From Tubulanus polymorphus (Eukaryota > Animalia > Nemertea), in the NCBI RefSeq assembly GCF_964204645.1, contig NC_134034.1:13467062-13531061 (forward strand): 64,000 nucleotides of DNA, written 5' to 3'. A program made the translations under genes and the position numbers. Below the pieces are notes generated by a model. The model was not told the origin of the DNA. It did no database searches and saw only the letters and a program-made list of their open reading frames with translations. The first letter of the stretch is position 1, and each line of letters begins with the position of its first letter. Below are positions 4,491 through 33,848 of the stretch, one piece after another.

Positions 4491-4620
4491 AATTTCATAT
4501 AAGTTTTGACGAACAAGTTATTTAGTCCTCTCGACCAATAATCCCGGGATGAATTTCAAAAAAAGCTTTTTAGCAATTAAGCACGAATCGTAAAACGTAT
4601 TTTCTCATTCATTTATTCAG

Positions 4621-7600
4621 GTTCTGTCGCTCGGCGCTGAAGTTCTACCGGAATACAAACTACAATCTCCGCGTATACATCGCTGTACGATTCTACACTA
4701 TTCGCCGTTTAAGGCCGTATGGGACTGGCTGATATTGATCCTCGTTATTTACACGGCCGTTTTCACGCCCTACGTCGCCGCGTTTCTGCTCAATGAAAAA
4801 GACCACAAACGCGGCTACAAAAACGACCCGCACGGAAAATACGCGCGTTACAGCGAGCCGTTAACGATCATCGACCTGATCGTAGACGTCATGTTTATCA
4901 TCGACATTCTGATTAACTTTCGCACGACGTACGTCAACAAAAACGACGAGGTCGTCAGTCATCCCGGCAAAATAGCCGTGCACTATTTCAAAGGTTGGTT
5001 CCTGATCGACGTTGTCGCGGCGATACCGTTCGATTTGTTGCTGTTCGGATCGGAAACCGACGAGGTATAGTATGAAGTCTGTGTTTGTTAGTTTAGATAT
5101 TTAAACATCGTCTGCCTCAAAGACAGACAGACGTCTGCCTCTAGGCGGACAGACGTCTATACAAGAAAGAGGTCCGTCCTTCAGACAAACACCTGTATTT
5201 GTCTAGACTATAGACAGCAGAGAGCCGGACGGTGTACGTTCAAAATCCCATAGATCAAAATCCCACAAGTCAAAATCCCATAGTCAATATCCCATTGTTC
5301 ATAATCCCACATATTATGATCAAAATCCCATATATTTTTATTATATACTATGGGGTATCTTATTTTTTACTATACAGTGCCGAATACTGTAGAAATATGT
5401 ATATGTTAATAGAATATAACCTATATGCTGTATGTAGGGCCTAATATAGGCTAATGAATGAATACAGATTGGTCTTTGATCTAGAGGATTAGACTAATTA
5501 TGATATGCTTTGATCAAAGGTGATTAAGTTGAGATTAATTCGAGCCGGACAGACACTAGTCTGCCTGTAGATGGATGGATGTCTAGACAACATGGCGACG
5601 TCTGCTTTAAGATCAACGGACATCTGTCTGCCTCTAGACAAACTGACATCTGTCTGCCTCTAGACAGACAGACATCTGTCTGCCTTTAAATGGAAAGACT
5701 GTGAGAAATGTCTGCTTGCAGGTGTATGTCTATGACAGCAGAGCGTCTGCCTCTAGCTCATGTCTGCCTTTAGACAGACACTGATATCTTCCTTGCCTCA
5801 AGATAGACAGACACTGTTCTGTTCGTAAAACAGGCTAACTGTCTATAGGTGGCAGAGGAACAAACACCTGCCTTGCCTCTACAAAGAAGGACATCCGGAT
5901 GGAAAACCTCTTACGACCGACCTCTGCCTTGAGTAGACGCCTGTCTGCGTCTAGACGGACTAAAGTCTGCCTTTAGACCGACGGAATGAAATGCATGCCT
6001 AGAAAGATATTGAAATAAACCGAGCTGAACTCCGGTCGAATTGCGGCTTTAAAATTGAATCTCAAAGATTCGAGAGTAAGGCGAGGTCTGTTTGTGTAGT
6101 ATACCTGATAATACTACCCTCTTTCTTACTATCAGTGAATTTCCTGAAATATTCTCACCCTCAATCACTCTTCCTTGGAACTTTATGGACCTGGGTTCCG
6201 TGGTTCCAACGCTGCTCTTTGTTAAGCTTGACTTTTTAGAGTTCCAGTGTTTTTCAAAACTAACCAAGAAACGGTTGAACCAGGTCCAGATTATCTTTGG
6301 CGGTATTTGACAATGCTGCCTTCTAAAGACCTTACTGTCTTTCTACTGTCCCTTTGAATGCCCAGACACGCTAATTTCCAACCAGGAACATGCAGTCTCC
6401 TTTTCTAATATCCTTCAATAACTGCTATCACCATCCAGTAATATATATATATATAACTAATTATTATCAAGTTATGTAGTAGATTTTGTTTTCCTCCTAA
6501 CTCATGTATTGTCGACCAAACTCAACTGAATTGCGCGACCTGGTAGAAGTGGCCGGTAGAGAGTTTGTAATCTGGAATTGCCATTTCTAAACCGGTTCAA
6601 TCGAAATCGGCCAAACATCTACTAGACTGCAGTTTAGTTTGGTTGGTAATTCGTAGAATTCAGCCCCAATCTGTGGAAAACACAGTGAATAAACTAAGGG
6701 TCCAGGACCCAGCAGTTCATTAGTTGTCAGTAAAGTTTTACTTCTTGGATCAAAATCATAGCATTTTCAATGTTTCCACTCTAGTGTCAAAACTGATCTG
6801 AAGACAGAAGATTTGGGTTAATAGTTTCTCTGCAAAAGATTTTGCTTTCGAATTGCTATAGATACTAAACATTTGAAGCAAGATTTTAAAACAATTTTTG
6901 AGTACGAGTCCGGAGTTTTGACACGAGGATAGTTTTTGAGAGTTGAATTCTACCATTTATTTGTTGTAATTGTAACTAATCATGATAATTTTGTCCGGCG
7001 CAATTCGGCAAATAGATTCCTTTTGATTGATAGAACTAAGGCGAAGCAGCCATTCATCAATGGTTTTTGGATGTTGAAATTCACGAGTTAACCCTTTGAT
7101 GGCCGTTATTGCGCACATGTTAATCTTTCGATAGCTGTCATCGCGCACGTGTTAACCCTTCGATGGCCGCTATTGCGCCGGACTAATTTCAGTGTCCTCG
7201 TGATGAATCAGTCGTATATTATGAAGTATCGTGTATTGTATATATATATATACATATATAACCGATCGATGTATCTTCTTTCATTTTCTCTGTTTCATTC
7301 GATTCCCACCAGGAGGCAGGTTAAACCATTTCCGATATATACTTTAATTCTCTTCCATTCATATTCGAATATTTTATTTATTTTTTTCATCTCGGTATCT
7401 GCATAAATAACTATATATATGTATATATTCGATAGATATATATGATATGGTTAATGCCTTTGATATCATTGCGAATAATCTTGGCCGACGGGTGCACCCC
7501 CTATTTTGTCTAATTTCTTTTTCATTTATTAATTCGGCTTGGCTTCATAATCCTCACGCACCCCCGAACATGTGTAATGAGTCAGGCTACTGATGGGGTT

Positions 7601-10600
7601 AGGGATTGTTTAGGGTATTATGTAAGGGTAAGGATGTTTACTGGGTAGATTGATTATCTTACTCTGGTAGGGCGGAGAAGGGTCGGTAGTATATAGGCAA
7701 AAGTAAAGTTGAAGGTAGGTCTATATTTAAGGATTAGGTGGAAACGTTTGTAGGCCGATGCAGCAGGGATATCGCCACAGGTCTCACAGGTTCAATGTTG
7801 GACCGGTATTAAGAAATGTGTATTTCGTAAAGATACATTGAACGTGTGTCATACATTGAACATGTGTCACCGGGGATCAAACCCGGGTCTCGTACATAGA
7901 AAACAAGCGCGTTAACCAGTAGACCAATAGCGGGGATCAAACCCGGGTCTCGTACATGGAAAGCAAGCGCGCTAACCAGTAGACCAATAGCGGGGATCAA
8001 ACCCGGGTCTCGTACATAGAAAACAAGCGTGCTATCCAGTAGACCAATAGAACTAATCCACAAGGTCTAAGGGGAACCGCTGAAGATGAGGGTGTGTGAG
8101 GGAAAGTAAAGGAGCAGTAGTAATCTTGACAAATTTTTTTTTTAATTTCTTGGTTCCCGGGCCGATCCTCAATAAGCATGAGACGCTAGTTTTAACCCTC
8201 GAGCACTCACCGCTGCTAAATATTCACCGTTCAAATCATTAAATATCGGCGTCGAATTCGTATTTTTTCCCTCCTTTGCTCGCCTTCTTGCATTTCGCAA
8301 ATTTTTTCAAAAATTTTAAAAACTTTTCATTTTTTCATAAACCACCCCTCCCCCCAGCCGTACGCGTATTTCAATGCTTTTCCCACTCGTCAAACAACGA
8401 ATATCTAATGCTTTATAATTGAATGATTTATATATAAACTTTCGAACCGAATAAGTTGACTTTATTTCCATCAAAAATTTAGAAGAGATATGTGTGATGA
8501 AAAGCGGATAAGACCAACATTTCAAACAGCGCTAAGATTCATCTACTGATAGAATGAAAATGAAAACGATGAATTTATATGAATTCGTAGTTTGTTTCTG
8601 AATACAAAATCTTTACCGAACAAACTGAAGCATAATGTATTCAGATCAACCGATTATTGACGAAATAGCGAATCAAAACGTCGCGCGGCAGACGGACACT
8701 CACGACAGACGGACACTCGGAACAGACGGACACGCGCGACAGACAGACGGACAATAAAATATGCCACAAAACGACGAACCCGCGCTGCGGGTGTCCATTT
8801 TATCTCGACAGTTTTGCTTCGTAAGCCCCTCGGACCATCGGTCTGGTTGTATTTGGAATAATCGGTTATCAGCGATCGGTTTGTCTCTCGATGTTAATTG
8901 AATGTTATTTATGTAAAAGCGCTGAAATGAATTAACTTTGCCTCCAATTCGCAGTGTTTTTTGTCGCCATCAATTTTTCCTCTTTCATTCTCTCTCTCTA
9001 TATATATATATATATATTTATTCATCATTGTCGTCTTTTCATCGTAATCGTCAATAATTTATATATTTCCAACTCATCTCGTCGTGGTAGAGGACGGTAT
9101 CCGCTCGGTCGGAAAAACAAAAACGTTAAAGGAACGATAACCGCACCCAAACGTGGTGAACAAATAATAAGATAAAAACCCACTATCTACAGATTAAAAA
9201 GATTTAAAAACAAGAATTTATTTATTCAATCTAAAATATATAGAATACACGACGTTTCGATCTCACCCTAGAGATCATCGTCAGGTCCTGACACCTGACG
9301 GTGATCTCTAGGGTGAGATCGAAACGTCGTGTATTCTATATATTTTAATCTGTAGATCGTGGGTTTTATCTTAAAAATGTTAAAAGCTGATCGCGGTGAA
9401 AACTATCTGGGATGAAAATATCGAGTTCCCTGGGTTGTGTATGCACACCCAATATTACCCATATACAGACATGATGATTCACCGATGTAAAAAAAAAAAA
9501 ACAAAGCAACTATGTATACATTTTTCTAGATGATTTCTCTTGTTTCTATTCTCATGTTTTATTTTTTCATTTTTGAAAAGGTCGAAAGGGCAATCGCCAC
9601 TAAGGTATATACATGCACTCACTCTCCGAGACTTACAATGATCCGTAAGAGTCATTACAGAACTTGAGGGGTCGATTCCACAGTTTTGAGTTTAGCCTGA
9701 GAGATAAACTTAAATCTTTTCTTTAATCGAACACATAAAATTGCACTGAAATGGTTTGAATGCTTGAACAAGAAACGATAGTAGTTTTGTACGTAGTTGT
9801 GCTGTTTACAGGCAACTCAAAACAACTTGAGTTCTAGTGAGATCCTTATGCCTAGCCTACATATGTTTCAACTAAATCACATTGGCGCAGGTGGCAGCGC
9901 AACGTCATTCAACTCAATGCAACTCAAGCACTAGCAACATCAATAAGTAGGATAGCTGAAGCCTAGTTACAACGATCACCAAAGGCTCAAACCAACAAAA
10001 GAAAATTTCACTGCCAGTTTAGGTCCTCTGGCCAACTTTCTCAAACAGAACTTTTCTCCTTGATATAGTTCATTTCTTTACATATTAATTTTCTTCGCCT
10101 TTCCATTTGAAGGGGTAAAATAAGTTTTTTGAGAGGTCAAAAGTATCTTGTAGACTTATATAGTTCACGATTCAAAATAGAAGAAATTGCAAAAAAACAT
10201 AGAATATAAACTAGAATATCCTTGAGGGGATTGGTTTGTGCAGCCATTAAGTAGAGAATGATGCACGAGTCAGTTAGTAAACTGGACCCAGTTCCACAGT
10301 TGTGAGTTAGAGTTAACTCTGAGTTAAAGTTAGTTCATTTTCAATGTTTTAACCCAGGGTCAAATCTTAACTCAGAACTGTGGAACTGGACCCTGTAGGT
10401 TAACGATAACCAAAATGATGAATACTATAGTAACAATGGAATATCAATTATCACTTTGTCAACTGAACAACTTGAACATTATCTAGACAACTCTAAAAAA
10501 ACTATCACTGATAAATGAGAAAATGAACAACTCGGAAAAATCGTTCTTTCTTTCTGAAACTTGAACATTAATTATTCTTCGTTTTTAATTGCAGACGACG

Positions 10601-13600
10601 ACGCTGATCGGATTGTTAAAAACGGCGCGGTTGCTACGACTGGTGCGCGTGGCGCGTAAACTCGATCGTTACTCGGAGTACGGCGCCGCCGTTCTGCTGT
10701 TGTTGATGGCGACGTTCGCGTTGATCGCGCATTGGCTCGCGTGTATCTGGTACGCGATCGGCAACGTCGAGCGGCCGCATCTCGGCGATTTGAAAATCGG
10801 TTGGCTCGACGACCTGGCGCGACACACGAAGCAGCCGTACAACGAGAACGATACCGATATCGGCGGGCCGGATTTGAAGTCGAAGTATATAACGGCGTTG
10901 TATTTTACGTTCAGCAGTTTGACGAGCGTCGGTTTCGGCAACGTTTCGCCGAATACAAACTCCGAGAAAATATTCTCCATTTGTGTGATGTTGATAGGAT
11001 GTAAGTATTCTCATACGGGTTTCATCGCTGAATTCAGGGCGTCGCCACTTACCTGGAGCCGGTTCCATAGCCAAGACTTAAGTCCAAAAGTCGTCTTAAA
11101 TCTTAAGGCTGGTCTTAAACTGTTAGATTAACTATAGAACTAAGATAGTCTTAGACTGGTCTTAAGTCTAAGCCATGACAATGGAACCGGCCCCTGGAGA
11201 TCAGGGTAAAGTCGGGGAATTTTCTTTTCCTTGTCAATTTCTAATTTCATTGATACATCACAGGTCCATCACTGATATGGTCTCAATCCACGCACTGTTT
11301 CCAATCATCCCCGGTTGTCAGGAAATATCCCTAAAGATACTTAACTGTCCTTCAAAATACTTAGCTGTCCGCTGACAGTCTGAAAATATTTACTGTCGCA
11401 TTTTGATGCGTTCAGAGCTGTCAACCATCCCTGATTGCAGGGACAGTCTCTGGAAATACTGTACTCTCCGCCCTGACGCTGTCAACCATCTCTCATTATC
11501 AGGAACAATCTCTGAAAATACTTCAATGTCCCCCTGATGTACTCAGAGTTGTCAACCATCCCTGATTGCAGGGACAGTCTCTGGAAAAACGTTATGCCTA
11601 GCGCACATCGACACTGCGATTGGAGACAACTAGTTGCAAGGCAGTTTTCGGCGCATGAGAGGAACTGGCTGGATACAATCAGTTGCTTGAATGTGTCGAT
11701 GTGAGCGAGCTTACGATTGGTAAGCGTCGATCTATCTCCAGTTCCAGCCAGTTGCCCATGTTCTACTTTTGAGCAACTGGTTGTACTCAATCGCAGTCAT
11801 ATCCGTCGATGTGCGCGCTCTGGATTTCGACGATCGACGCGCGCCATGCAGTTGCTGCAACTGACCGGTTGTAACTAGATTTCGATGTGCGCGGGGTAAT
11901 CGTTCGATAGCAACTAGTTGTCTCCAATCGCAGTGTCGATGTGCGCTAGGCTTTACTGTCCATACCCGACCTGCCTCTCCCTATAGATACTAACAGTCAT
12001 CCTCATGTATTTGTTTGTCTTCAATTTTCTCCTACTCTCCTTCTTTCAGCTCTTATGTATGCAAGCATTTTCGGTAACGTCAGCGCGATTATTCAGCGTT
12101 TATATTCAGGCACGGCGCGTTATCACACGCAGATGCTACGCGTTAAAGAGTTCATTCGTTTTCATCAAATACCAAACCCTCTACGACAACGCCTCGAAGA
12201 GTATTTTCAACACGCGTGGTCGTATACGAACGGCATCGACATGAATATGGTACGTTAATCATTTGCATAAATCAACGTATCATTTTCATGCGATATTTGC
12301 TCCCTCCGTATCAAGTTAAAACCTTGAGAACTATTCTGGAAATCTAGACTATAAGACAAATTTTCTGTGGACAATGGCAATTTATGATATTCTTTTTCGA
12401 GAAAATGGTAAAATTTTACCTCGGGTTGGTACTATTGCAAACCTGACAATTATTTTGGGATTGCCTCAGAGTCAAACTAGCCACAAGATTGATAGCTACT
12501 CGGCCCTACACTAGATGTGACGAGCCTCAGTCCTTTCTTATTGTCTTCACTTTATACATGGTTTCTTTTTTACAGGTCCTCAAAGGATTTCCGGAATGTC
12601 TACAAGCCGATATATGTCTACATTTAAATAGAAATCTTCTCAACAATTGTCCAGCCTTTAAAGGTAAGCTTAGTTACAGCAATATACGCGTGGATAAACT
12701 CAATCAAAAATTACATCGAGGTAGACTTCTAAACTTCTAAATGCTTTTAATCTTCTGGGTTCTTATAGTTTATACACTAGTGGATCCAGTAGTTGATGTC
12801 CTAGTCAACAGTAGCACACCTGGTGGATCCTCACTTGCCACAAGTGGAATCCTCTATGATGTCCTACTGCATTCTAGCAATACCTGGTGGATCTTCACTT
12901 GTCCCGAGTAGAGTCATCTATTGTCACAGTAGTTGATTTCCTATTGTACACTAGCGACACCTGGTTGATCCTCACTTGCCACAAGTGGAATCCTCTATTG
13001 TCGCAGTAGTTGATTTCCTATTGTACACTAGCGACACCTAGTGGATATTGACTTGCAACAAATGGAATCCTCGCCGCAACAGTTTTAATGTTAATGATGG
13101 TACACTAGCGACACCTGGTGGATGTTCAGTATAGTAATAACGACAGACGGATACAGAGTCCTCATTAATGTGTGTATTTGGTTTTTCTTTCATCGAGGAG
13201 CCAGTCCCGGTTGTCTTCGTGCGCTGTCTATCAAGTTTAAAACGACGCACGTACCGCCTGGCGATACTCTCGTTCATCGCGGTGACGTGTTAACCGCGCT
13301 CTATTTTATATCACGTGGATCCATAGAAATACTGAAAGACGACGTCGTCATGGCGATTCTCGGTAAGTAATCTACGATTTCTGAGATTAATTCGTTGAGT
13401 TGATTTTCGAGTAATTAGTTTAGATCAGTTATAAAGGTATCAATCTGCCGCCTGGGTCTACCTGAGCGGACATTCAATATTTTATCACCACTCCCAATTG
13501 TTCAGGCTTCACATGTGTTCAGTACTTTATGCAAACATTGTTAATCAAAAATGAACTCCAAACATCAGATATTAGACATTTTATCAGTTTCAAAAACTTA

Positions 13601-29731: not shown

Positions 29732-32700
29732 TCAAGGGGACAGACGCTCGAATAGCCAGCCGTTTTCGCCCACGTGGGTCAAGGTCGAATCGATGATCTC
29801 GCCGTCTGCTCGACGACGGAACACGATGCGGTCGTGCAGACGGTTCGTTTGTCCCTGCCAGAATTCGATCACAGTCGGTTTGACGATGAACCCGCCCCTG
29901 TAAATAGAAACAAATTATTTTAACTTTTTTGCTGCATCAGTCCACCTCAGTTTATCGTTATAACTCTTCGTACACACACCAGACAACTTCTTGTCTCTTT
30001 GAGATTGCATATTTTGGGAATTAGAATAGATTATATACTCAACTTACCAATAGTCGGGTTTAGGCACAACTTTATCCTTGTACTCTTTGGTTAGTTCATC
30101 ATTTTTTTTCTGAAGCACCTACAAGAAAAAAACATCAAATTCACAGAGCCATCGGTTAATCAACGTGAGTTAAGTCCAAACATATCATTATCCCGATGGA
30201 AATTAAATTCTCATAGATGCCTACGATTTAAGACCAATCTAAATTAAACCATCTTTACTCAATTGAAAATCTAACAACTAAAGACAAATTGTTAAGTCTT
30301 AAGACTGCTTTTGGACCTAAGGCACAACTACACAACCGGGCCCTGATTGGTTTCAGTGAAGGAAAGATGGCTGCCTCCATAAAATCCCCTTAAATTCACT
30401 AGCCATGGTAAGTAATTTGATGATGACCGGGGATTTATAAGCCATCTTTTCAGGAAAGGTCTAAAGATCAATTCAGTAGTTATGAAGTAAGCGTCCGTAT
30501 TTTCAGTCGGGTTTTTAACCTACCTCTCTATTGGGTATAACCGTACTCTGATGGCTCACTGCGGCTCCTATTTGACTAGACTGTGGACGACTGTGGAAAT
30601 ATTCACTGGATTCCGCCTCTGATAGTTTTTCCACTTCACCTTCGATTCTCACCTGCCGAATAAAATCTGATTCATTTTGAAATTTGATCCACGGAATTTT
30701 GATCCTCAAGTCTAGGAACTATTCGTTAATAAAATAAGAGGGCAGCTAAGCATTTTGTGAGACTGTTCCTGGCAATCATGGGGGCAGCCAAGCATTTCCA
30801 GGAACTGTTCCTGGCAACCAGGGGCAAGAACATTTGCGGGAACTGTACCTAAGAATCAAGAAGCAACGAAGAATTTAATGGAACTGTTCCTGGTAGGTAT
30901 TTATAGATAGCAAAGCCTCTTCAGATATTATATGGAGGTGGTTGGCGGCTCTGAGGAGGAAAAAGCAAAGCCTTGAATCATTCATACCTACCGATCGACT
31001 CATTGGGTCCCAATAAAAACAAAGCGAAGCAAAGGGATTCGATAACTGCAAAATCAATAAACAGACAAATTAATTATTATCGAAATCAATTAAATTATGC
31101 CTGATGATGGCTAATAGGTTTTAGCAAAACTTCATAAAGACTAGGTAGTCTTCATGAATTTTTGTTTAAGCCAAAACATTGCCCAAATATATATTAACAT
31201 TCGAGAATTGTCCTTTTGGCTGAAATCATTGTGGGATATCTCATCTCGATTGAGGTGAATTTTCAGTTACGATCGTGAGTTCGCGTTCGATTACTCAACA
31301 GCCCTGTTGTTACCTGACGACACCACGATTCACTGGGATCATTTACCGACCAGTAAAACGACAAACACGCTAACGGATTTTCATCCTTCAAAAAATCGTG
31401 TAAATAACAATTCATATATATCAACCGTCGTTACAAATATTTGACGTCAAAATGCTTATAATCTGAGCTAAGATTGGTCTGATACCATATTGGTTGTATA
31501 ACCGATCTAACAACTTAAGACCAATTTAAGCTCATTTTTGTGCTATAGCCAATCTAACAACTTAAGACCAGTCTAAACTCATTTTGGTTCTATAACCAAT
31601 CTGACAACTTAAGACCAGTCTTAGCTCATTTTGGTTCTATAACCAATCTAACAACTTAAGACCAGTCTAAACTCATTTTGGTTCTATATCCAACGTAACA
31701 ACTTAAAACCAGTCTAAGCTCATTTTGGTTCTATAACCAATATAACAACTTAAGATCAGTCTAAACTCATTTTGGTTCTATATCCAACCTAACAACTTAA
31801 AACCAGTCTAAGCTCATTTTGGTTCTTACCAATTTCACAACTTAAAACCAGTGTAAGCCATTTTGGTTCTAAAACCAATCTTATAACCTAAGACCAGTCC
31901 CTGCCCGTGTTGGTTCTAAGACCAGCATGCAGCTCAGTTTTGTTTTAGACCATCTATATAGTCACAACTGGTTCCACGAAAATGCAACTTTTAAAATCTC
32001 TACTTGTTTGAAAATGAAATAGACCCGACAACGTTCGTATCAACGTATCCCCCCCCATAGTTTCAGGATTTACTCACCAGTTCTTGAGCTTTACGACTGC
32101 CGTAATTCGTATAGAATTTAAAACCGTTGTCGTCGAATCCCTTGAGAAGCACCATTCGAGCAGACGGCTTCCCATCTCTGTGAAAATAGACACATAAAAC
32201 ATCAGATTGATTGATTGATATTTGATTTACATAGAACATATACAATGATACAGAGAAAAGAATTATCAAATACAAAATGAGAATACCAATTTAATACATT
32301 AAGTAGGAGATGATTCTATGAATGACTGACCCAAAGCCTCAAGGCTGTATCACGAAAGCGAGGGCCATCCCTTTACGAAAGGAATTAATATCATCAGACT
32401 TCGGAGAGAAGGCCCGGGGCTGGCGGGCCAAGTGGCGACAAGACTATTGGGATCTAATTCCCAGAATGAAATCGTACCCCATTGTGAGATTAGGTAGTCC
32501 AAGGACAATACGGCATATCGACAAATTCAAGTTCTTGAATTACTCGTTTGATGGCACTAGTCAGAACTAAGCCTAGTCAAAGGTTAGTATCGGACTACAG
32601 TACTGAGCTCATCTTGATTTAAGTCTAATACAGAGCCGTTGATCTATGAGTAACAGTAAGATCATCTGGCATTCTGACTAATCTTGATTGTAAAGGCGAT

Positions 32701-33848
32701 CTAACGGTTTAAGACCAAAGTATAACATCCTTTTGGTTCTATAACCAAATCGAAGCACATTTCATTTCTATAGCCAATCTAACAGCATAAGACCAGTTTA
32801 AGCACATTTCATTTCTATAGCCAATCTGACAACTTAAGATCAGTTAAGCTTATTTCAATTCTATAGCCAATCTAACAATTCAAAATGGGTCTCAAAATTT
32901 AAGACCATCGCCTAAAGTGAAACCAGGGGCCGGTTCCATAGTCGCAACTTAAATCCAAAATTGGTCTTAAATCTTAAGACTGGTCTTAAGCTGTTAGATT
33001 AGCTATAGAACTAAGATAGTCTTAGACTTGTCTTAAGTCTAAGCCATGACTATGCAACCGGCCCCAGGGCCTGAAACACTGAAATTTCACATACGTACTT
33101 GGAAGCAGTAGCTAATGTCATCGCGTTACTCTCTAGTATTTTATCACATGAGCACGCCTCTTCAAACCATGCAGTAAACTGTTTTATCGGGTCACGAGAT
33201 ACTAAATCGTTGATGTCGAATTTCTCTTCTTTGTTGTGATACGGCTTTCGCATTCCTGTCGCGTAGAATTATATAAATAATGCATTCCGTTAAGCCTGTT
33301 GTATGGTTAAAGTTGGGTAAAAGTGCAGATCCACACCTCACGTGATTGACGCAATCTGCTGCATGACAGAATCCAGGCTAAAATCTTTCTAGTGAAGATA
33401 TCTTAAATTAACCAGTGGCAATGTAGGTCTACTGAATTACTGAATTTTGAATCTGAAACATTGATATTTAATGTAATTGATTGAACCGTTTACGCGGAGA
33501 GGTGTGGATCTGCACTTTTACCTATAGTTTTTACCTAAAAGTTAAGACCCATCTGAATCAGAAACACCAACCCCTGGGAAATTTAGAGTTACATAACATG
33601 TAAAAAGGAATACCCTATTGTAAAGCAGCAAAGCAACCGGGTAATGGCATGCAATCTAAGGGCCACAGGGGGTCTACAGGTTACTGACACAAATGTTATT
33701 ATCCACTAATTTAATATGGTACCTTACTATTTCTTAACTTACCAGCGACATTGAGCGACATGTTTTCGATTGTGGAAAATCCCCGGCGATAAAAACTACG
33801 AATGACCCAGTTACTCGTAGTAGTCGTTATCTTTCGTAAAAATGTCAT
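29732..33848 (-). CDS. PNPO: Pyridoxine/pyridoxamine 5'-phosphate oxidase
   Basis: Minus-strand exons 33848-33743, 33255-33099, 32177-32078, 31045-30992 (or 31385-31314), 30652-30524, 30118-30048, 29897-29732; all GT-AG and phase consistent. Motifs: [75 protein letters not shown]. Confidence 0.96.
31314..31385 (-). CDS. PNPO: PNPO duplicated exon 4 variant (exon 4a)
   Basis: 72 nt, phase 0-0, tttttgaag acceptor and CAG|gtaaca donor. Encodes [24 protein letters not shown], homologous to exon 30992-31045 ([18 protein letters not shown]). Confidence 0.8.
31465..31960. repeat. 47-bp tandem repeat (~10 copies) in PNPO intron 3
   Basis: Unit ttggttctataaccaatctaacaacttaagaccagtctaagctcatt. Confidence 0.9.
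32927..33064. mobile_element. PIF/Harbinger-type MITE
   Basis: gggccggttccatagtc ... gactatgcaaccggccc with a CAG TSD. Confidence 0.85.

Follow-up and report, generated by a model that had tools for sequence, protein, structure and literature searches.

The window analysed here, a stretch of 64,000 nucleotides from the genome of the nemertean Tubulanus polymorphus, carries on its minus strand a complete gene for pyridoxine-5'-phosphate oxidase (PNPO) with seven exon positions, each of which we read and translated separately. Coding exon 1 (33743..33848) matches residues 1-36 of the RefSeq isoforms X1, X2 and X3 at 100% (tblastn) and is joined to exon 2 at 33743/33255; the RefSeq start codon lies at 33848 and another in-frame ATG at 33761. 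Exon 2 (33099..33255) follows from its translation and from the joints 33743/33255 and 33099/32177, both at a contig depth of 508.6. Exon 3 (32078..32177) ends on ..SRKAQEL in phase 0 and provides a donor that is shared by two versions of exon 4. Beyond these, exon 5 (30524..30652) starts with VRIEG, serves as the shared acceptor and has joints with 31314 and 30118. Exon 6 (30048..30118) was placed by direct reading, by its junctions and by tblastn of the RefSeq isoforms, and exon 7 (29732..29897, including the stop codon) is reached through the joint 30048/29897 and encodes the PNP_phzG_C domain (PF10590, 65.3 bits).

The two versions of exon 4 follow each other directly on the minus strand. 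The upstream copy, exon 4a (31314..31385), is the long one: its 72 nt encode 24 amino acids with an Arg-Gln end, it is flanked by ttgaag and gtaaca and it takes part in the joints 32078/31385 and 31314/30652. Behind an intron of 268 nt (31046..31313) lies the short copy, exon 4b (30992..31045), whose 54 nt encode 18 amino acids with an Arg-Ser end; its flanks are ttgcag and gtaggt, and it is reached from exon 3 through the joint 32078/31045. Both exons are of phase 0-0, have an AG acceptor and a GT donor, and are multiples of three in length. The initial annotation of this DNA had placed two phase 0-0 exons with intact splice sites between exons 3 and 5, and on re-translation both the coordinates and the peptides proved exact. 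A motif scan of the whole window revealed no third copy of exon 4, so that the gene has two copies only. PNPO itself is single-copy: in a search of the whole 268-Mb assembly the Pfam matches occur at this locus alone.

Some further properties of the gene were recorded along the way. Introns 3 (31486-31899) and 2 (32753-32878) contain 8.9 and 2.7 copies, respectively, of a 47-bp tandem repeat, which is very abundant genome-wide (summed contig depths of tens of thousands in sequencing runs X2 to X4). The upstream RefSeq ATG adds 29 residues (33848-33762) in front of the Met that matches other PNPOs in alignment, and residues 1-27 have an AlphaFold2 pLDDT below 50; this N-terminal extension may be a targeting peptide or a mere disordered tail.

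Identity of the gene and its isoforms

RefSeq holds three protein models for this gene, annotated as pyridoxine-5'-phosphate oxidase-like, all of which map on the window from the ATG at 33848 with no mismatch inside exons (tblastn). Isoform X1 (XP_074658824.1, 266 aa) contains the exon 4a peptide exactly, as residues 122-145; isoform X2 (XP_074658825.1, 260 aa) contains the exon 4b peptide exactly, as residues 122-139; and isoform X3 (XP_074658826.1, 242 aa) has neither. The three form one cluster at 90% and were reached by a search with exon 2, which led to database proteins and from there to a homology search; full-length sequences in all analyses are database proteins. Although these models describe the same gene, they are automated predictions that are silent on the exon pair, its conservation and the position at the FMN site.

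Both full isoforms are recognized as PNPO by domain profiles. For PF01243 (PNPOx_N) and PF10590 the scores are 99.6 and 67.8 bits with isoform X1 and 101.2 and 67.8 bits with isoform X2, all above the curated cut-offs of 28.1 and 27 bits. The NCBIfam equivalog TIGR00558 (pdxH, cut-off 180 bits) is likewise exceeded by both (249.7 and 259.0 bits). Of the residues that bind FMN and substrate (human numbering), an alignment of 69 sequences shows R95, R141, R161, W219, R225, H227 and R229 to be invariant, with K100 nearly so, and the Tubulanus protein has all of the invariant ones. Residue 139, in a column that varies among invertebrate PNPOs, is Gln in isoform X1 and Ser in isoform X2. Taken together, the gene is PNPO (PdxH), and its product is predicted from sequence to carry out the FMN-dependent oxidation of PNP and PMP to PLP.

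The hairpin encoded by exon 4

Comparison with the human enzyme shows where the exon pair acts. Human PNPO (1NRG, 8QYT) has the same fold and domains as the Tubulanus protein (phmmer against 1NRG: E = 2e-87 over residues 30-266), and the residue numbers of isoform X2 coincide with the human ones (R141, R161, W219, R225, R229). In the alignment to 1NRG the six extra residues of exon 4a fall between human Glu134 and Pro135, and its final Gln aligns with human Gln139. This bears out the initial description of exon 4a as a 6-aa loop insertion that keeps the Gln, and of exon 4b as an exon of normal length with Ser in place of Gln. The same description had assigned the RQ-V-R stretch to FMN contact, which agrees with the listing of Gln139 and Arg141 among the residues holding FMN in human PNPO by a 2024 review (PMC10969823); that paper mentions neither splicing nor isoforms.

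AlphaFold2 models of both isoforms, built on the 69-sequence alignment, are confident (mean pLDDT 87.6 and 88.2). They place the hairpin strands at 126-136 and 141-154 in isoform X1, and at 126-133 and 138-148 in isoform X2. According to the models, exon 4 encodes a predicted beta-hairpin in the split barrel that binds FMN. The hairpin ends at the counterpart of human Gln139, and the long exon is predicted to extend each of its strands by about three residues.

The retrieved PNPO proteins of primates and other vertebrates have an exon 4 of short length that ends in R-Q, as judged from proteins only, whereas the short exon of Tubulanus ends in R-S. To our knowledge vertebrates have a single PNPO exon 4, and we know of no alternative exon there. 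Outside vertebrates the Gln is far from universal: Ser, Cys, Val, Ala, Met or Tyr occupies the position in many invertebrate PNPOs, some of them confirmed and some apparently single-exon. Since residues other than Gln are common, also in species that have only the short exon, the short form is probably not a crippled enzyme, and the idea that the Ser of exon 4b is a defect was rejected on these grounds.

The same variability can be turned into an argument that the two isoforms are both made and biochemically equivalent, the pair being kept for other reasons such as control of splicing or of expression level; if so many residues are found at the Gln position, loss of the Gln is apparently tolerated. 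Against this speaks the fact that the exon 4 region belongs to the FMN site, and we return to equivalence below, where the comparison between phyla bears on it.

Intronless PNPO copies were also encountered in metagenome contigs from ENA. One contig (L007) carries two tandem intronless PNPO genes (7473-8204 and 10001-10777), both lacking Gln at the FMN-contact position (N-R-T in one, S-R-S in the other). Another (L008, 1.8x) carries at 8786-9340 an intronless PNPO of 184 aa, with a 20-aa equivalent of exon 4 that ends in R-Q; the loop length is thus intermediate, and several Trp occur at positions that are usually Arg. It resembles a retrocopy made from the PNPO mRNA of an animal.

RNA evidence for exon use

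Evidence from RNA comes from one RNA-like sequencing run (run X2, not to be confused with isoform X2), which is kept as Logan contigs, so that the depths given here are not read counts. It contains cDNA, because its contigs are spliced, with minus-strand GT..AG introns at every PNPO intron. Runs X3 and X4 behave as DNA from the same sample, and run X5, labelled as possible RNA, gave nothing. Of the joints, 15 of 42 are listed, and conserved contigs may have been filtered out.

Outside the exon 4 region the PNPO introns are spliced at depths of 500-670: besides the joints on either side of exon 2, exons 5 and 6 are joined at 586.5 and exons 6 and 7 at 665.7. From exon 3 the flux divides, with a depth of 443.9 into exon 4a and 143.3 into exon 4b, which amounts to about 76:24 in favour of 4a; exon 4a in turn is joined to exon 5 at 353. 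In this one run the predominant form is therefore 4a, which is fully spliced, and roughly one quarter of the flux from exon 3 goes to exon 4b. The initial annotation had allowed for the case that exon 4a never occurs in RNA, which this run contradicts. It had also named five junctions by which the use of the pair could be judged: 32078>31385, 31314>30652 and 32078>31045 are present, while 31314>31045 (exon 4a to 4b) and 30992>30652 (exon 4b to 5) are not among the joints listed for the run. Nor is a joint from exon 3 directly to exon 5. Exon 4a is thus seen joined to both of its constitutive neighbours, and exon 4b to the upstream one.

Book-keeping of the contig depths adds to this picture. 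The inflow into exon 4a (443.9 + 12.7) compares with an outflow of 353 to exon 5 and 98.8 into the unspliced intron behind it (contig 31017-31341). As the outflow equals the inflow, there is no room for a joint between 4a and 4b. For exon 4b the inflow is 143.3 + 98.8 = 242 and the outflow into the next intron 123.9, so that about 118 units are unaccounted for. Adding these up, 353 + 118 + 124 comes close to the 586.5 observed between exons 5 and 6. Since the missing outflow of exon 4b is the amount needed to fill exon 5, a joint between 4b and exon 5 is implied by the contig depths, together with RefSeq isoform X2, and probably exists.

The contig that accounts for the intron outflow (30766-31003, depth 123.9) crosses the 4b donor and extends into intronic sequence with a stop in frame; part of the RNA containing 4b is therefore unspliced downstream. 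Overall, unspliced contigs of the run cover intron 5 (30119-30523) at a depth of 57 (about 590 when spliced) and the region from exon 4a to exon 5 (30653-31313) at 99-124, which suggests that the introns around the alternative exons are removed slowly.

The read-through contig could be taken to mean that exon 4a alone gives the working enzyme and that exon 4b is a decoy or poison exon leading mostly to unspliced or unproductive RNA, with the RefSeq model X2 having no real mRNA. The in-frame stop, the 4b to exon 5 joint not being among those listed and the lack in exon 4b of the Gln that contacts FMN would all fit. The depths do not, however: the units missing from the 4b outflow are the ones that exon 5 needs. 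The comparison with other species, given below, makes the decoy exon improbable.

Mutually exclusive use of exons 4a and 4b, which the initial annotation had put forward, is supported. Isoforms X1 and X2 each contain one of the two exons, and three of the joints expected for alternative use (exon 3 to 4a, 4a to 5 and 3 to 4b) are present in the run. Neither the RefSeq models for Tubulanus nor the joints listed include a form with both exons. Judged from the contigs of this single run, the two exons appear to be joined rarely or never.

Probable exclusivity of the two exons

In Tubulanus we found nothing that would enforce exclusivity among the three mechanisms considered, namely steric hindrance, RNA pairing, and frame shift with decay. 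Steric exclusion can be dismissed, as the 268-nt intron between 4a and 4b is too long for it. For docking and selector pairing a repeat search returned only weak inverted matches of 15-17 nt; RNAduplex on whole introns produced meaningless full-length duplexes and is uninformative on selector pairing. Because the lengths of both exons are multiples of three, transcripts that include both or skip both would escape nonsense-mediated decay. The situation may differ in another nemertean, Lineus longissimus, where the intron between the long and the short exon measures 44 nt (4596-4639 of locus L010). Splicing can probably not remove an intron of this size, and mutual exclusion would be steric there.

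Exclusivity is not absolute, given that RefSeq contains a model that skips both exons (isoform X3 of Tubulanus) as well as models that include both in decapods and in Physella. Models of the latter type, in which the hairpin is duplicated, are Portunus X1, Homarus X1, Physella X1, a UniRef entry of Scylla olivacea, and models from Macrobrachium and Petrolisthes. They may reflect leaky exclusivity in decapods and Physella, or be artefacts.

Conservation and age of the pair

The initial annotation had proposed to look for both exons in related genomes, and pairs were indeed recovered from nemertean, annelid, mollusc and decapod loci or isoforms. The taxa sampled are those returned by protein searches. 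The long and short forms of a species are alike except for exon 4. Such pairs, without any retrieved form including both exons, were obtained for Lineus longissimus (290 and 284 aa), Owenia fusiformis (273 and 264 aa), Aplysia californica (240 and 234 aa) and Scylla paramamosain (273 and 267 aa). Physella acuta (287 and 281 aa) and Homarus americanus (278 and 272 aa) have in addition a form with both exons, of 305 and 296 aa respectively. For Portunus trituberculatus the long form (273 aa) and the form with both (291 aa) were retrieved, and the short form was not. Region-restricted protein searches with Scylla and Tubulanus X1 queries added no long-loop forms beyond decapods; bacterial PdxH dominated their results.

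In four genomic loci (Lineus, Portunus, Physella and Owenia) the exons were placed by exact translation. The order exon 3, long, short, exon 5 is the same in 4/4 loci, and each exon is of phase 0-0 with AG/GT sites. Including Tubulanus, the short exon measures 54 nt in all five species and the long exon 72 nt, except in Owenia (81 nt). The long exon accordingly encodes 24-27 aa and ends in R-Q, and the short exon encodes 18 aa, mostly with an R-S end. Apart from the 44 nt in Lineus, the intron between the two is 268-865 nt long. A duplication that is recent or confined to Tubulanus can be discarded in view of this order and length, which are conserved across four protostome phyla.

Each class also has its own loop motif, common to several phyla: FYW-S-x-N-x-E-x-x-[ST]-[WIV]-[SCA]-R-Q for the long exon and FYW-[ED]-[PA]-[LM]-M-[RK]-[SV] for the short one. 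The two classes cannot be told apart by the core of 12 residues that precedes the loop. Between phyla the short exon is the better conserved one (mean identity 0.67; long exon, 0.52). For a dN/dS comparison even Lineus, the closest species that has both exons, is so remote that synonymous sites would carry no information. Within Tubulanus, about 3-5% of the intron positions around 4a and 4b (30766-31341) differ between sample S2 and the assembly, with several small indels; none of the differences among the rows listed lies inside either exon (there are 17 further rows), which is a weak sign of constraint.

Several loci contain one of the two exons. A profile scan found the short exon alone in the sea urchin Lytechinus and the wasp Vespula, and the long exon alone in the annelid Dimorphilus. 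The Lingula locus (L015) consists of the last two exons and Ns only and is uninformative on exon 4. This distribution is most simply read as a single duplication that preceded the divergence of the protostome phyla, with later losses.

These data bear on the decoy exon mentioned above. A poison exon would hardly be expected to be better conserved than its productive neighbour, to retain intact splice sites and a fixed length of 54 nt in five species, or to be the only exon 4 in the sea urchin and wasp loci, and the vertebrate exon 4 is short as well.

Biochemical equivalence of the isoforms fares somewhat better but is unlikely in our view. That several lineages retain just one of the two exons agrees with it; the class-specific loop motifs and the exact lengths, kept in four phyla over a very long span, would scarcely have lasted unless each peptide were under selection.

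Least probable is that the exon was duplicated independently in Tubulanus and in other lineages and that the long loops resemble each other by convergence. The core without class signal, and a long-long similarity between phyla that is no higher than long-short, could be cited in its favour. Nonetheless, the long copy would each time have to arise upstream of the short one, with the same phases and (save for the long exon of Owenia) the same lengths of 72 and 54 nt, and the loops would have to converge on S-x-N...[ST]-x-x-R-Q for the long and [ED]-[PA]-[LM]-M-[RK]-[SV] for the short class.

Proposed explanation

Summarizing, the best explanation is that Tubulanus has a single PNPO gene with a tandem pair of exons 4, of which normally one copy enters each mRNA, and that the duplication predates the split of nemerteans, annelids, molluscs and arthropods; we put the probability of this reading at about 0.8. 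An exon would have been duplicated before that split, giving the tandem pair, and both copies would have been kept since in fixed order and length, the long one upstream (72 nt) and the short one downstream (54 nt), to be used as a mutually exclusive pair. The long form would have an extended hairpin and keep the counterpart of Gln139, an FMN contact of human PNPO, and the short form would have a hairpin of vertebrate-like length with Ser instead of Gln. The products X1 and X2 may then be isoenzymes, distinct in their redox behaviour, their regulation or the way they bind flavin. As PNPO forms dimers that bind FMN where the two subunits meet, heterodimers of X1 and X2 are possible.

A bolder version, to which we would give even odds, is that protostome PNPO has a switch of its FMN-contacting hairpin that is more than half a billion years old, and that the two isoenzymes form an undescribed layer of vitamin-B6 homeostasis. 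Such isoenzymes, which could also heterodimerise, would differ in how they bind flavin, in whether they prefer PNP or PMP, or in their feedback inhibition by PLP.

The rate of vitamin-B6 salvage is limited by PNPO, whose control through allostery and the tight binding of PLP is being actively studied; in humans, mutations of the gene cause neonatal epileptic encephalopathy. As far as we know, detailed work on PNPO has all been done on enzymes with one form of the exon 4 hairpin. The pair thus offers a ready structure-function experiment: natural hairpin variants that differ at an FMN contact, spread over four phyla and hundreds of millions of years. On a practical level, it accounts for the PNPO isoforms X1, X2 and X3 in many invertebrate genomes, and it flags the models including both exons as probably non-functional.

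Comparison with known exon pairs

A full-text literature search yielded no paper on alternative or mutually exclusive exons in PNPO; a candidate paper uses the two terms independently of each other. The initial statement that no such pair had been described holds in this respect, but not for sequence databases, where automated RefSeq models of Tubulanus and many other species carry both forms. The decapod, gastropod, Owenia and Lineus pairs found in RefSeq and GenBank have the same two classes, the same order and the same lengths as the pair in Tubulanus; tandem models including both exons occur in some decapod annotations and in Physella, whereas none was seen for Tubulanus.

The pair is a further case of mutually exclusive exons derived from tandem exon duplication, a kind that is already known. 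Exons 9 and 10 of the pyruvate kinase gene PKM and the exon pairs of tropomyosin arose in this way. PNPO differs from these in the 18-nt length difference between the copies, in that skipping or including both leaves the frame intact, and in that no enforcing mechanism was found in Tubulanus. It has several of the marks by which mutually exclusive clusters are recognized: adjacent homologous exons of the same phase, intact splice sites and conservation of both copies in other species. Few mutually exclusive exon pairs are conserved across phyla, and with PNPO a metabolic enzyme joins them; the pair stands out because it is conserved in four phyla and because it exchanges a portion of the site where a vitamin-B6 enzyme binds its cofactor. 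Like the pairs in PKM and tropomyosin, exons 4a and 4b of PNPO are adjacent, homologous and of the same phase, probably enter the mRNA one at a time, exchange a single structural element and have been conserved over long evolutionary times.
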